A stretch of 64,000 nt of DNA from Pelomyxa schiedti (taxonomy: Eukaryota; Protista; Evosea): contig JAHLWZ010000869.1 of assembly GCA_020536535.1 (NCBI GenBank), positions 1,595-65,594 on the forward strand, given 5' to 3'. Below the pieces are notes generated by a model. That model saw only the letters and a list, made by a program, of their open reading frames with translations. It was not told where the DNA came from and made no database searches. The position numbers and the translations under genes are program-made. Positions 56,663 to 64,000 of this stretch are shown here, in pieces. Position 1 is the first letter of the stretch, and each line of letters opens with the position of its first letter.

Positions 56663-57939
56663 ATGTCTACAACCGATAGTTGCAGTTGCACCGCCACGAC
56701 CCCCGAGGCGCCCACAACAACAACCCCGGCTCCCGTCGCCGAAACAACAACACCGACTCCCACAATTGCACCAACAACCCCTGCGGCCCCCGCTGAGCAA
56801 CCCGAGAAAAAGTGCGAGTGTTGTGAGCACACCCCAAGCACCGAAACACCTGCCGTCGTCGCGGCTACCCCGAAGACCGAGGAGGCCCCAAAGACTGAGG
56901 AACCAAAAGTAGAAGCTCCTGTGGTGGAAACAAAACAGGAAGAATCCAAAGAATCAACATCACCATCAACAGCAACAATTACTCCAATAGTAGAAACAGC
57001 AACTCCCACACCTACAACTGCAGCAGCTCCTCAGCCTGAGGACGATGATGTCCCTGACCTGGAGGATCCCACTTTGGCAAAGCCAAAGGAAGACGAAAAA
57101 ATCGGTGGGTTATATCTATCTAAAATGCTTAAGTCAATTCAATAAAGTAACACTAAGAAAATAATAAGAGGTTGAGAGGGTAGTTCTGTTCTGTATGTAA
57201 CTCCACTACAGAGGCTGCACAGACCAAGAAACAGAGCAGAAGTGAGAAAAAGTCCAGACAGGCCGTTGCCAAGCTCGGTCTCAAGCCAGTACCCAATGTC
57301 ACTCGAGTTACCATGAAGCGTGCCAAGAACGCCATGCTGGTAATCATCAGCCCCGAGGTATTCAAGGCACCAACCTCCGACACCTACGTTATCTTTGGAG
57401 AAGCCAAGATGGAAGACACTTCCAACACAGCTGCATCCAATGCAGCCAAGGAGATTGAGAAGGCAGCCCGCGCTGCCGGAGTCGTCCCTCCCTCCACAAC
57501 CCCAGCAGCAACAACCCCAGCTTCTACAACCACTCCCGCAACCACCACACCAGCTCCTGCCCCCGAAACCACAACTACAACCACCACAACCACTACTACA
57601 ACTCCGGCAACACCGGAAGCTACCACTCCAGTGGAAACACCTGCTGTTGCAGAAACACCTGCAACCCCTGCCACCCCTGCAACGCCAGCAGCACCAGCAG
57701 CACCTGGTAAGTTCTATTTCTTCTTCTTGCCTTTTCAGCTCACAGACTCCTAGTTGAAGACGAAACGGGTCTTGAGGCCTCTAAGATTCAAACTGTTATG
57801 GATCAGGCCAAGGTCGACAGAGCCACAGCAATTCGCGTCCTTCGCGAGAAGAAGGGAGACATGGTCGAAGCTGTCATGGTATTTTCCATTTCACTGTGCA
57901 CTTATCTTTGCTAACTTTTTTGGATAGTCCCTCTCATAA
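56663..57939 (+). CDS. NACA: Nascent polypeptide-associated complex alpha subunit with Thr/Pro/Ala/Glu-rich expansions
   Basis: QSRSEKKSRQAVAKLGLKPVPNVTRVTMKRAKNAMLVIISPEVFKAPTSDTYVIFGEAK; UBA-like C-terminus VMDQAKVDRATAIRVLREKKGDMVEAVM. Confidence 0.92.
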
Positions 57940-58136
57940 GCCCATCCGCGTTTATACGGTTTTATTTGACTCCGGAAAAATAACACCAGCAGCACACTTC
58001 CGTACTCTTTGTCGAAACAGAATTTAACAGAATTACCATTTCAGTTTCTTCTTGTGTTGGCGAAAACGAAAAAGACTGATGAACCTGTGTGATTTGTCCT
58101 TGTGGTCAAATTGTTACCACAAGGACACCCCAATCG

Positions 58137-61100
58137 CTAAATTTCCCACGAGGAATCAACAAAGAGAGATTCGCATAAAATCACAGGGAGGCGAGGAGGG
58201 CAGAGGCAAGGGCACCCCAGGACTGAGGGGACACGTCGATCAGCAGGGCGCATTGTGCCTCGGCCCAGTCCATGGACTTGCTGGCCAGGAGCTCCCATTC
58301 GTCCCTCAGTGCAGAAAGGTTCTTCTCGAGGAAATCTGGGGGTGTTGGTTGTTCAGAAAATTTGGGAGTGTGGGTTGGGGAATACCTAAAACTACAAAAG
58401 TCATCCAGAGTTGGTGTGCATCAACTGAAGAGGGTGTTGTTGAAAGTGCATCACTTGGTGGTTGCTGTTGTTGTTGCTGCTCAGGGCGTTGCCGGGGTTC
58501 ATGTGGTGGAATGGCTGAGAGAACTTTTTCAAGAGTTACACCAATAGCAGCTGCAACAGGTTCTGTGGCCGGCCAAGACCCGTCCGCGTTTTGCAGCAGC
58601 GCGATTGAGAGGAGCTTCTGGCTCGCAGCCGACTGCTCCGCGGACTCGTTCTGCTGGGAATTGGAGGCAGATTGACAACAGGAGGCTCGTCCGGACTGTA
58701 GCGCCTTTACTGCAAAACCTATTTTGGCTTCTGGTGGTGCAGGAGCAGAATCACAACAAACCGCGGAATCACAGTCGTCCGCGGTGCAGTCTGAATTGGA
58801 ATTAGGAGCACAAAGGAAAAGAATTGTCCCCACAACCCCTCCTCATCTTGACAATGCAGTCAACATAGCCATGGATTAGCCTGGAAATTGCTTGTCCATC
58901 TGAGGTAATTAAATTAAGGTACTCATCTGAGTGCCCGCCAAAGTCTATTGTCAGGCTCGAAGCCGTGGGTCCCCATCTTTTGAGGAAGTGCAGAGGATAT
59001 GTCTTGGTCACAGTCTTGTTGGAAAATATTAGAGTGCACAAGGGTTCAGTTGATATCGAAAAACATGGGAAGCTGGATCCAATTCGAAGATGTTGCTTCT
59101 TGAAACACCAAGGAGTATATCTCTTAGAGCGCCCTTACTTTTAACCTTTGACATACATTTATTATAATAGAAGTATTACAGGAAGGCAGGTGACCTTGCA
59201 AGGAAATATTGACATTCCAAATGTAGGTAAGGAGTGGGCATGTTGTACATATCTGTACTTTGCGCACTCAGGATCCATTTTGCCAAGTCGAGCCCATCCT
59301 GTTTCAATTTCTTTCAGGATGTGTTTTTGGTTCTGGAGAGATGGAGGAAGTAAGTCTTGTAGTTTGCTTTAAGGCCGTTAGTTCATTTAATCAGGAAAAT
59401 AAATTTGAGAGAAAGAGAAATAATGGGTAATACAGCTTCAACGATTTTTTGTTTTGTGAAGTGTCAAACACTCCAAGAGTGACCAGGGCATCCAAAGATG
59501 CAAGCTGCACCATTTCCTCGCGAGTGGTGTAAAGAGTACCATTGATAATTTGCTCTTTCACCTGACCATATCAGGCAGTTACTGAAAGTGTTTTGGTTTT
59601 ATTACCGTCTTATAAATAATTCCGCACTGTGTCGGTTCAATAGCCAAATTACTATCCGCTATGTATAACTTTTTTTTGAGAAGAAGGAGAGACTCCGGAC
59701 TAATGGGCTGTTCCAAAAGGCTCTTTTTACTATCCAACGGTGTATCAATCCCTATTGCGGCAATGGGAGAAGTGGTGTTTCTAGTACGTTTTTGATTTAC
59801 AGGACAAAATACCACTGTCAAAGAACCAATCATCAGCGGCATGTGTGATGCCAATGCTGTCAAGAATGGTTTCTATTGCCTCCTTTTGAAGTGGAGAAAT
59901 GGATATGAATACTAAAGAAAAATACAATATCCACAGGTTCATACTTTTATAGGTCGTCTCTCATCTACTAGAATGGTTCTCACCGTTCCATCCAACAACT
60001 TGACTTGTCGTGGAACAGTGTGTTGTCGTTTTTGGAAAGTATCAAAAGCTGGACATCCTTCACCTCTTGGGGTTGTGGGGTGGGCAGCGCTAGTGGGAGT
60101 CATTGAATTATCCGTAGAGCTGATATTCCTCTGAACGCCCACATATGAGGTCAGAGTGGAGAGAACCCCATACTTCGTTGAGAGTTCAACAATCATTTCT
60201 GAGTGTTGTTTTTTTGGGTTTCTGTGCATTAGTCCTGGAACACAAGAATTCTCCAATTCTTTTATTCTTTCCCTGATAATAAATGAGAGGAGAACTCAGT
60301 TCCCAACTTGTAGTAATTGATTGTAATACCGAACACCGAGGCAGTGAAGCATATCCCCTTCAGGTAGAATGACACTTGAACTGAGTGAGGAGTGAAAATC
60401 ACATGCCATAGCCCTGAATTCGCCGTGGAACGAAACCACATCTTCCGTGGCGGTAACATTTTGCTGTTCTAGTCTGTGAATTTTTCATTGTTACAGGCAC
60501 AGAAAAAAACAAGAGAGGAAAAAACCAAATATACCTTCCAGAGAAGAACCCAAAAATGGTCGTGGTACAATTATTTTCAACTCGGAATTCTGCTGGAAAT
60601 GTGGAATATACATTCAACTTTGGACTCCAGGTAATGGACTGGTTCAAGATGCGGTCGTGAAGAACTGCTTTTAATAGCCTCATGACCTGTTGGAAGCTAG
60701 GTAAAATGCACTCCTGAACGTTGTTTATAGGGGCTTCCACTCACACCTTGGGTTCAATTCTTTCTCCCTCTCTGGCATATTCGGAGACACCATCACCAGC
60801 ATGAGAAAGTCCATCAACAAGTGGTTTTGAGCAGCCACCGCCAATTCCAAGTGAAAATACATGACATCTGCTTTCCGTTGATCTAGCTGATGCTACTGCA
60901 GTAAGCACTGCATTGGTGTTCAGCACTTCCCCGTCAGTGATAACAACAACACTCCTAGGGGAGAATTACATTATCCTTCTCTATCTTTGAATGTTTCTCA
61001 CCTGACAGAGGAATCTACTGCAAATGGTTTTCCCAGAGTGTGAACAAGAGGTTCCAAAAGCTCTGTTCCCCCCATGTTGGCAGACTCCATTTTTGCCACT

Positions 61101-62800
61101 TCCTTTGTTGCGCGCTCCAGTTCTGATTGGGAGTAGCAAACACTTTCATTGTACATCTCAGAAAATTTAGTGCCAAATCTGCCAGACGGTTATCGATCGA
61201 TAGGACATTGAGAAAATACCCGATAATGTTGATTCGGGTTCCAATCTGTTAGGTGTTAAATATTCCATCAAGATAACACTTTACGCACAGGAATTGAACG
61301 GAGGAATAGCTGCAATGCTCTGACGGCATGTGTTATCCTGTATCCACTCATTGACCCACTTCTGTCAAGCAAGAAGATCTATTCTCACACAATCCCAAAG
61401 AATTTATGAGTTTTCACCACAGTAGCGAGGGGAAATGTAGGCTCATACAATTTCTCTTTGATGTGTTGCCCAACTGGAAGGTGGGTGCTGCAAGGTAATA
61501 TTGGGTGAAATCAGCGCCGCAATGCAAGTCGAGTTATGCCTGGGGCTATACTCTGTGTACATCAATGTGGTTGGGCTTCCGGATACACAAAGAACCAAAA
61601 TGAAATCTGACTCCTGAAGTGGTGCATCATCACAGGCGCACTCCAAGTGGGTGACTCCTTCAGTCATTGATTTAGTGACCTAAAAACCCAGGTTTTAAGG
61701 TCATTTCTTTTGGGAGAGAACGCCCATTTACGTACAGATATTTGATTACTGTGCGATGGAGATTCAATTGACAAGCTATTGCAAGGCATTCCTTTTTCTC
61801 AAAAATGAGAGGAGATCGTAGGATGCACACATACGTATATCCATGGAAATATGGAGTGGACAACTACCAAAACCCACTTGCTGGCTGAGGGAAGTCTGGT
61901 AACTTATGGGATGAAAAAATGAAACTGGGAAGGAAAAGAAGAGTTAATTGATTGAGTCAATTGAATAGCGCAGCGCGCCGCAGCAAAAAAAAAAAATACA
62001 TGCCAGCTTTTGCCGGAATGAGAAACTTTCTCACCTGCTTTCCATTGCCCATATTTGTAGTTATCAGTTGGGTCACACACTCCACAAGTATTTTCGCCTC
62101 GGTCCCGGGAGCCAAATTTCCCAATGAAAGTTTGAACCCATTGTCTCTTTCTTGATCAAGAAGAAAGGCAGTATGTCCTGATGCAATTGCATTGTCATAT
62201 CTATTTTCATCAACTCAGAGAGTGTCTTTTCTAGAGACGATAGGAATTTATGATTCACATACATCTGAAAAGCAAGTTCACTTTTGCAACAGGTTCCAGT
62301 GATCAAACTTCCATTCATATCGGCGCTGAAACCCTTCACTGTGGTTTCAAACTGGCAGTGCCACAAAGGAAATTGGAACGTGGTTTCAAGAGAGTACTCT
62401 GTGCTGTTGCGAAATGTGTAGGTGATTGTGTAAGACCCCATGAGGCCCATGATGCAGCCTTCAACAGAGACGTTGGACATGGGAAGGAGAAGTTGCCTCC
62501 CCAATGATGGGCCACTGGTAGTTACCTCTCCCCTCAATCCAAACCACGAGTTCTGAATCTTATCAAGGTATTCCTCAATGCTTTGAGGTGGTCCAAAGTC
62601 TGCTAAAGATGGAGGATTGTATTGACTGTCCTGTGACAGTGCTGGTGATGGATGAGAATCCCCAGCAGTACTCGAAAGTAGTTCATCGAGGAACGCAAAA
62701 GTGTCGCTGCATTCATAGCTGGAATGTGTTTTCCCTCTATTTGCACATGCACAAGATGCACTCCCAGAAGAGGCAACATAAAACACTGTGCCGGATCCAT
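58137..62800 (-). CDS. VIT-vWA (vWA5A/PARP4-like) protein with an inserted talin-type FERM head (F1-F2-F3)
   Basis: VIT: YTFRNSTEYSLETTFQFPL, YDNAIASG, SLGNLAPG. vWA: FLLDRSGSM, MGGTELLEPL, ITDGEV, FSLGIG. Talin: VKLLDGTVRTILVDE, LLLKKKLYIAD, AKYRYVQHAHSLPTFG, KRWGPTASSLTIDFG..GQAISRLIHGYVD. vWA5A-like tail: LQNADGSW, DEWELLASKSMDW. Confidence 0.85.
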
Positions 62801-62873
62801 CCTTTGTGACAAAGATATTTCTCTGTGAATTTTCTCTGAGCAATCCTTTTTTGTTGCTGGTGGTTTGGTGTTA

Positions 62874-63673
62874 TCATACTTGGACTCCGTTGTGATGGGC
62901 TGGTTTATTCTTTTGAAGCAATATTGTGCCATTCACTAGGTTTTCAACAGAATTTATTAAATCAGTACCAGCTTGTGTCAGCTTATTATGTGATTCTGGT
63001 TCTGGCGTTAGGACTGCTTCCTTTTGTGTATTTATCATTCGTGAATGGGAAAGATTAAATACAGTACGTCCACTAACCTTTGAAGCCCTCGCCAGTTTTG
63101 AAAACTGCAGAGTGACATCCCGCATTTCTTCACGTGCTCGAGGGAGAGAATTATTGGGGTGTTGCACTATTAATTGAAGAAGGGCCTTCACAGAGGAATG
63201 AATGTGCTTAATACAGTCCATAATTTCTGTTGTCACTGTGGCTTGTGCAAGGTTCTCCACAAATTGTTTTGACTGAGATAGAGAAATCCTAATTTGATCT
63301 TCTGTCTCCTATTTCTACTAATTACAAAAGGGAAAAAAATAAAAAAATTGCCAGACATTAGCTCAAAAAGGAAAAAAAGTACCTGAACAAGGGGTGTTGC
63401 AACAGATCCTGGTCCCTCAGTCGTATGCGCCTCCCCCTGTTGGATCTGTTGGGGCGCCGAGGAGGGTTGTGAGGCGGAACCAGATGTAGCGGAGTCGGTT
63501 GGGGCGGTAGAAGCCAGTTGTGGGTGCTCCTGTTGCTGCTGTTGTGGTTGCCCTTGTTGATGTTGATGACGATGCTTGTTTGCCAACTGGCGTGTGATCG
63601 ATGCCACCTCCGTGGTGGGTTCTCCCTCTTGACGCACAACTGACGTACCAACCAGCAGACACCAGTACTCCAT
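62874..63673 (-). CDS. Gln-rich protein with a talin-rod/vinculin-like helical segment; separate gene or 5' part of the VIT-vWA gene
   Basis: Amphipathic helices EIMDCIKHIHSSVKALLQLI...LARASK..KLTQAGTDLINSVENL; splice linkage to the downstream gene unresolved. Confidence 0.5.
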
Positions 63674-64000
63674 TGCGGGACGTTCGTTAGTATTCCCTAC
63701 CTACTTTGTAACAAAGCGTTTTTCAACGGTTGGCTTGTCCTTTTGATTTCGCCGTTTGGCCCGCCACAAGAAGACCCCAAAAAAAGACAACGAACACAAC
63801 GACAGAGGGTCTGATGAGTAGCGGGGGTACTTTGCGAAACCCAATTCTTTACCACATCGAATGGGGGGCAGGCCCACCAACCGTAGCAGTCTCCTCCTTG
63901 TCGTCGTCTTCGCCGTACCCGCCGTCCACGCCTGCGTCCCTCAGGCACACGTCTTACGTTCGAGTGCCCGGCCCAACCCACGCGACGCTGGCCCGCGACC

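Follow-up and report, generated by a model that had tools for sequence, protein, structure and literature searches.

A talin-type FERM module carried in the loop of a VWA5A-type protein of the amoeba Pelomyxa schiedti

A minus-strand gene in a 64,000-nucleotide (nt) stretch of Pelomyxa schiedti DNA (hereafter the window; assembly GCA_020536535.1, contig JAHLWZ010000869.1, which ends at window position 64000) encodes a VWA5A-type VIT-vWFA protein that carries a talin-type FERM module between its body and its C-terminal helical domain (CTD). We propose that this is a VWA5A-clade protein with a loop-acquired, talin-derived FERM, which would act as a membrane-recruited binding hub, and we give this reading a probability of about 0.6. 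Taken by itself, the architecture is close to certain, whereas the functional part alone is evenly balanced. GenBank already lists the protein, generically named, as KAH3745507.1 (1083 amino acids [aa]; P0001 here), and this entry was the 100% match when the 59-aa F3 exon was searched by phmmer against 1.84 billion representatives. None of the papers searched contains this accession or describes a VIT-vWA plus FERM architecture. The initial annotation, which did not recognize the architecture and thought it might be undescribed, is borne out insofar as the combination was unique in our searches and appears in no paper searched, but the sequence itself had been deposited beforehand.

Domains were called with per-exon Pfam scans and with Pfam on P0001. 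The features covered by P0001, in the direction of transcription and in window coordinates, are as follows.

62002..62480, minus strand: VIT domain, in exons 3 and 4 with an intron at 62201-62262 (Pfam VIT, residues 2-112 of P0001, E = 2e-19).
60780..61454, minus strand: vWFA domain (Pfam VWA_3, residues 263-420 of P0001, E = 2e-20).
60128..60779, minus strand: VWA5A-clade body following the vWFA domain, up to the signature IVELSTKYGVLSTLTSYVGV (alignment to Xenopus VWA5A).
59945..60272, minus strand: junction exon (exon 14), in which the VWA5A body ends, a Ser/Thr/Pro linker of 28 aa follows, and talin-type F1 begins (RNA).
59639..60043, minus strand: FERM F1, ubiquitin-like, without the long F1 loop (talin-1 head alignment and AlphaFold2 [AF2] model).
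59195..59638, minus strand: FERM F2, helical (Pfam FERM_M, residues 702-808 of P0001, E = 8e-14).
58838..59145, minus strand: FERM F3, an IRS-type PTB domain with the KRW motif kept (R851, W852; Pfam IRS, residues 816-892, E = 2e-13).
58636..58837, minus strand: Cys/Ser/Gln-rich linker that follows F3 and makes up the rest of the loop (predicted local distance difference test [pLDDT] score <50 in AF2; no family match).
58184..58635, minus strand: VWA5A-type CTD, with an intron at 58336-58385 (alignments to VWA5A and to the Pelomyxa paralog P0152).

The gene was modeled as 22 exons with a coding span of 58181..63673 on the minus strand. Phase arithmetic over these exons gives 4275 nt free of stops, or 1424 aa if translation starts at ATG 63673. 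Exons 5-22 are identical to P0001, whose start is a Met inside exon 3 (ATG 62480), and the stop codon occupies 58181-58183. The span originally assigned to the gene, 58137-62800, does hold it, but position 58137 lies within the 3′ untranslated region and 62800/62801 marks no more than where exon 3 begins.

Contigs from three single-cell RNA-seq runs (X1-X3) and one DNA run (X4), all from a single study, were compared with the model over window positions 58001-64000. The three RNA runs yielded 15 splice joints, every one of them GT..AG on the minus strand. Five remaining introns were placed by GT..AG ends, frame, and homology, and one of these is backed by a 13-nt loose end of an RNA contig at 61289, identical to the first letters of the next exon. 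Overlapping spliced RNA contigs form one chain that reaches from ~60650 to 58116; further spliced RNA contigs, with gaps between them, cover the VIT and vWA exons.

The passage from host to module falls within the single exon 59945-60272, which holds the VWA5A-type signature IVELSTKYGVLSTLTSYVGV, the talin F0-F1 linker, and the start of F1. This exon is bounded by RNA-supported GT..AG introns (60273-60329 and 59883-59944) and covered by X3 record 13, X2 records 8 and 9, and X1 record 2. Two upstream exons are spliced to it in X2 record 9, the F1 and F2 exons downstream are linked to it in X3 record 13 and X2 record 8, and X3 record 12 spans 59511 to 58116. In a PDB sequence search, residues 85-115 of the open frame 59942-60295 aligned to talin-1 residues 83-113; in the ESM atlas, the junction exon matched unnamed clusters only. 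The initial annotation had correctly placed the junction in one exon, though the bounds it gave, 59939-60256, were those of an open reading frame listing. It had also named a stop or splice-out between vWA and FERM as what would undo the fusion; the RNA contigs are instead spliced through the junction as one transcript.

By domain content and alignment, the host is assigned to the VWA5A/BCSC-1 clade of intracellular VIT-vWFA proteins. Residues 1-578 of P0001 are collinear with Xenopus VWA5A 18-591 (E = 8e-56), and residues 1-587 align with 216-764 of the Pelomyxa paralog P0152 at 40% identity. Beyond the FERM, the VWA5A-type tail resumes, as had been claimed: residues 950-1062 align with Xenopus VWA5A 680-767 (E = 1e-8) and 960-1082 with P0152 1008-1108 (E = 2e-14). 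Searched against PDB sequences, the tail exon gave no significant match. Per-exon scans found VIT at 62076-62870 and 61960-62214 (E = 1e-6 to 2e-8) and vWA pieces that include the DRSGS exon 61289-61378, and alignment to VWA5A shows a complete MIDAS (metal ion-dependent adhesion site; D269-x-S271-x-S273, T341, and D369 of P0001). The Pelomyxa protein thus shares with the VWA5A/BCSC-1 clade the VIT domain, the MIDAS-bearing vWFA domain, the post-vWFA body with its signature, the long loop, and the helical CTD, collinear over ~700 residues at 29% identity to Xenopus VWA5A and the same 40% to its paralog. It differs from the clade in having a 290-aa talin-type FERM in the loop and a probable N-terminal extension of ~340 aa.

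Proteins of this clade, including Dictyostelium Vwa1 and human VWA5A, are intracellular (Boland et al. 2023, PMC10539598). Their CTD is tethered by a long disordered loop and docks on the vWFA domain in AlphaFold models, autoinhibition of the vWFA domain by the CTD has been proposed, and little is understood of what VWA5A/BCSC-1-type proteins do (PMC10539598). Secretion of the Pelomyxa protein would be implausible given a cytoplasmic FERM. The likeness to integrin I-domains that was first pointed out is weaker than it sounds, as the scaffold comes from an intracellular clade that accepts many different accessory modules.

Because VWA5A-type proteins align in order with P0001 before and after the FERM, the FERM is an insertion. 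It sits in the normally disordered body-to-CTD loop; typical relatives have a spacer of 85-130 aa there and P0001 one of 371 aa. When P0001 575-955 (the FERM and its flanks) was modeled in AF2 with 35 talin-type heads as the alignment, the FERM mostly scored a pLDDT >90 and both flanks <50.

The module is of the talin type. Residues 590-900 of P0001 align end to end with the talin-1 head (PDB phmmer, E = 7e-41), and the same search scored kindlin-2 at 3e-13, merlin at 5e-6, and moesin at 1e-4. Talin heads filled the first 12 places of a Foldseek search with the AF2 model, at E = 2e-25 to 1e-22. The F2-F3 part of the model fits talin F2F3 to 2.4-2.8 Å, and the strands and helix of F1 are present in the model with pLDDT mostly >80. 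Per-exon scans placed FERM_M at 59394-59570 and 59165-59368 (E = 2e-6 to 5e-6) and an IRS-type PTB at 58805-59134 (E = 5e-12), and the F3 exon matched only talin-1/2 among PDB sequences, with a best E of 5e-11. These results agree with the initial annotation that a talin head is inserted into a VIT-vWA protein, that F2 and a PTB-like F3 follow F1, and that the FERM is talin-type. A kindlin identity was considered and rejected, with no PH match on P0001 and a score far below that of talin.

Of 58 columns conserved across 85% or more of 22 talin heads, the insert retains 42, distributed as 6/9 in F1, 17/26 in F2, and 19/23 in F3. F3 is better conserved than F1 and F2: its identity to talins is 40%, against 42% between true talins, whereas F1 and F2 stand at 29-31%, against 37-39% between true talins. 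The retained R851 and W852 correspond to talin-1 R358 and W359 in the numbering of the literature. The long F1 loop is absent from the insert and also from most protist talin heads in our set.

The initial description as a talin head holds for F1-F3 but not for F0, which is missing. Pfam gave no FERM_f0 match on P0001, and true talins in the same scan have one; the talin-1 alignment of the insert starts in the F0-F1 linker. Pfam likewise gave no I_LWEQ, Talin_R4, or TLN1-like_RS match on P0001. With neither F0, rod, nor I/LWEQ, the protein is therefore not a talin. It shares with the heads of talin-1/2 and amoebozoan talins the F1-F2-F3 order, the IRS-type PTB fold of F3, and the KRW pocket; unlike talin, it is without F0, the vinculin-binding helical rod, and the I/LWEQ actin-binding end, and its FERM is embedded in another protein and lies on a long branch. 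In a maximum-likelihood tree, the insert fell weakly beside the talin of the amoebozoan Stygamoeba (33/88) and was sister neither to Mastigamoeba talin nor to the double-FERM protein P0002. As it has no supported position, its donor lineage is not placed. A talin search with the Mastigamoeba talin head as the query returned 37 matches, none of them named Pelomyxa.

No other protein joining VIT/vWA to a FERM was found in the F3-exon search of 1.84 billion representatives, in which P0002, besides P0001, was the only protein with an F3 far from its N-terminus. Among the best 120 of 479 VIT-vWA relatives examined for Pfam families, FERM_M and IRS were found in P0001 only. A word-index search with P0001 500-900 returned only the self-match, its sensitivity for distant FERMs being poor.

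Across the same 120 relatives, the scaffold is combined with a variety of accessory domains: EF-hands, UBA-like, zf-UBR, ubiquitin, HSP70, 14-3-3, and synaptobrevin. Of the relatives listed, the two closest paralogs are P0152 and P0153, both from Pelomyxa schiedti and on other contigs. Each has a synaptobrevin SNARE motif in the same loop, before the CTD (P0152 818-874, P0153 719-776). This R-SNARE motif covers Pfam profile positions 3-60 of 89 and comes without the transmembrane anchor. P0152 and P0153 thus share with P0001 the scaffold and the insertion site between body and CTD, and differ in having an R-SNARE motif there where P0001 has the FERM. A Paratrimastix homolog, P0240, has ubiquitin at 680-751 in the same loop, followed by the CTD motif. 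The body-to-CTD loop thus looks like a recurrent insertion site. A synaptobrevin motif is also present in a Mortierella VIT-vWA protein (P0247).

P0002, the second-best match of the F3 search, offers a comparison of another kind. It is intronless and 1529 aa long (L001 3001-7590; contig JAWVHD010002872.1 of GCA_040384145.1), with ~650 aa N-terminal to its FERMs that match no family, and it presumably resembles Dictyostelium FrmA. Like P0001, it has a talin-type FERM outside a talin; it differs in having two talin-like FERMs and no VIT or vWA, and its FERMs group together, apart from the Pelomyxa insert.

The GenBank model lacks part of the N-terminus. The upstream features are as follows.

62481..62801, minus strand: 5′ part of exon 3, an N-terminal coding extension outside the GenBank model (paralog alignment, open frame, and RNA).
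62802..62879, minus strand: putative intron joining exon 2 to exon 3, 78 nt, GT..AG, phase 0 on both sides (from sequence).
62880..63308, minus strand: exon 2, a helical segment of 143 aa predicted to form four helices (AF2, single sequence).
63383..63673, minus strand: putative first exon (exon 1), starting at Met 63673, a Gln/Ser-rich low-complexity segment of 97 aa (open frame).

The 107 codons of exon 3 upstream of the P0001 Met are open, and from 62870 to 62481 the frame has neither an in-frame ATG nor a stop. The product of 62481-62801 aligns with residues 70-215 of P0152, the W-x-GLRGEV motif included, and X3 record 14 covers 62568-62786. An extension that is open, transcribed, and ATG-less needs an upstream start exon. 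Across the 78-nt intron, the stop codon of the exon-2 frame lies inside the GTATGA donor; the join 62880/62801 is probably real on these signals, and no RNA contig spans 62802-62879. The next intron, 63309-63382, is seen in X2 record 11 and leads to ATG 63673. Exon 1 has no Pfam match, and we infer that it belongs to the VIT gene. GenBank has no annotation across the upstream exons. Very probably, then, the coding region continues upstream to ATG 63673, and the extension with the two upstream exons would probably add about 340 aa.

Exon 2 gave a four-helix AF2 single-sequence model with a pLDDT of 59. It matched Pfam Talin_IBS2B at E = 4e-4, under the curated cutoff, and in the ESM atlas its top ten named clusters were all talin rod or vinculin (0.91). 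Foldseek with this low-confidence model found nothing below E 0.1 and only generic four-helix bundles, and a search of PDB sequences gave no significant match. On these comparisons exon 2 may bear a weak resemblance to talin-rod, vinculin, and FAT bundles. We do not claim it as a talin rod domain, its phmmer matches to the talin set being weak and positionally inconsistent.

A few further details of the gene model were noted. At the exon 4/5 junction, the GenBank model implies a GC..AG intron at 61925-62003 and ours a GT..AG intron at 61903-61999; the two differ by 6 aa (18 nt), and neither intron is among the RNA joints. The 57-nt intron 60273-60329 is unspliced in X3 record 13 and spliced in X1 and X2 contigs. 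When retained, it holds an in-frame stop at 60296-60298, and the unspliced copy is either partly processed RNA or DNA carry-over. Gln-codon repeats at 63530-63550 (exon 1) and 58458-58479 (CTD loop) vary in length, with a 9-nt insertion at 63539 in the DNA contig and a 3-nt deletion at 58475 in one RNA contig. Short Gln-codon repeats are also common to unrelated contigs.

The proposed mechanism starts from the FERM. F3, with its Arg-Trp pocket kept, together with the remaining basic residues, would bring the protein to NPxY-type tails and/or acidic membrane, and the MIDAS of the vWFA domain and the VIT surfaces would bind partners at the site of recruitment. The protein would then be a membrane-recruited binding hub and not an integrin-actin link, and it may serve as an adhesion or membrane adaptor. 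Talin A of amoebae is considered to make use of SibA's NPxY tails (PMC12686525). The SNARE-bearing paralogs suggest that the loop may be the site where the family receives targeting modules.

Several points weigh against this proposal. The FERM branch is very long, at 2.11 changes per column where the median is 0.54, and this could mean a changed or lost function. Some features by which talin binds membranes are reduced: F0 is missing, an Ala stands in the K817A column where talin-1 has a Lys (presumably K324), and the F2 basic patch, judged by eye in the talin-1 alignment, has lost some of its Lys/Arg. No ortholog turned up that would show the fusion to be conserved over time. Whether a signal peptide is absent would depend on the N-terminus, which GenBank puts at 62480 and our model at 63673.

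Some of these points would also fit a lineage-specific and largely neutral exon or domain shuffle, in which the insert folds but has lost talin-like binding and the protein keeps an ordinary VWA5A-like function. The long branch, the occurrence in a single species, and the loss of F0 and some basic residues favor such a history, as does a family that tolerates many modules in or near the loop. However, all seven FERM exons are open in frame and correctly spliced, F3 is as conserved as it is among true talins and keeps 19 of 23 conserved columns, and AF2 folds the module with a pLDDT >90. We therefore consider a neutral insert unlikely.

The FERM could also be mainly an intramolecular regulator, with F3 binding the CTD or the N-terminal four-helix segment and thereby gating the vWFA/MIDAS. 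In talin, F3 binds the rod bundle R9. In the Pelomyxa protein, the FERM occupies the tethering loop of the CTD, for which autoinhibition of the vWFA domain has been proposed (PMC10539598), and exon 2 is helical with weak talin-rod/vinculin/FAT-like signals. But the join of exon 2 was deduced and is unseen in RNA, its talin-rod resemblance falls below the curated threshold and is inconsistent against talins, and the conserved Arg-Trp pocket fits a peptide ligand equally well. This makes a mainly regulatory FERM rather improbable.

A bolder scheme would see the protein as a rearranged talin relative in which a rod-like four-helix bundle and the F1-F3 head flank a MIDAS hub. F3-bundle or F3-CTD autoinhibition would be released at NPxY receptors, adhesion or phagocytic receptors would be coupled to MIDAS ligands and not to actin, and the loop would be the VWA5A-family site for membrane-targeting modules (FERM, SNARE motif, ubiquitin). 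We regard this as a long shot. An artefact, whether a chimeric assembly or two neighboring genes merged, is essentially excluded: the data are single-cell genome data and the best DNA run, X4, may be from the source sample and hence not independent, but the junction lies within one exon, spliced contigs from three RNA runs cross it, and the VWA5A-type CTD resumes past the FERM in the same transcript chain.

Downstream of the gene lies a convergent neighbor, 56663-57753 on the plus strand, which is NAC-alpha-like (NAC domain, E = 8e-9) and has low-complexity regions that are very long and rich in Thr/Pro/Ala. At 58046, an RNA contig terminates in a short A run and adapter, ~70 nt from the RNA limit of the FERM gene at 58116.

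Talin heads are known in talins and a few FERM-only relatives. Here, a talin head lies within a MIDAS-bearing, presumably cytoplasmic hub, a module reused on its own in Amoebozoa. The protein is already deposited, undescribed in the literature, and found here in one species only, and with one gene in one hard-to-culture anaerobic amoeba, the immediate impact is modest. The insert nevertheless offers an experimental entry to VWA5A, as it suggests membrane or receptor recruitment via the loop. The SNARE motif or ubiquitin found in the same loop of relatives points to a pattern and not a one-off, and, if true, the loop as a site for membrane-targeting modules would be a handle on what VWA5A-type proteins do.

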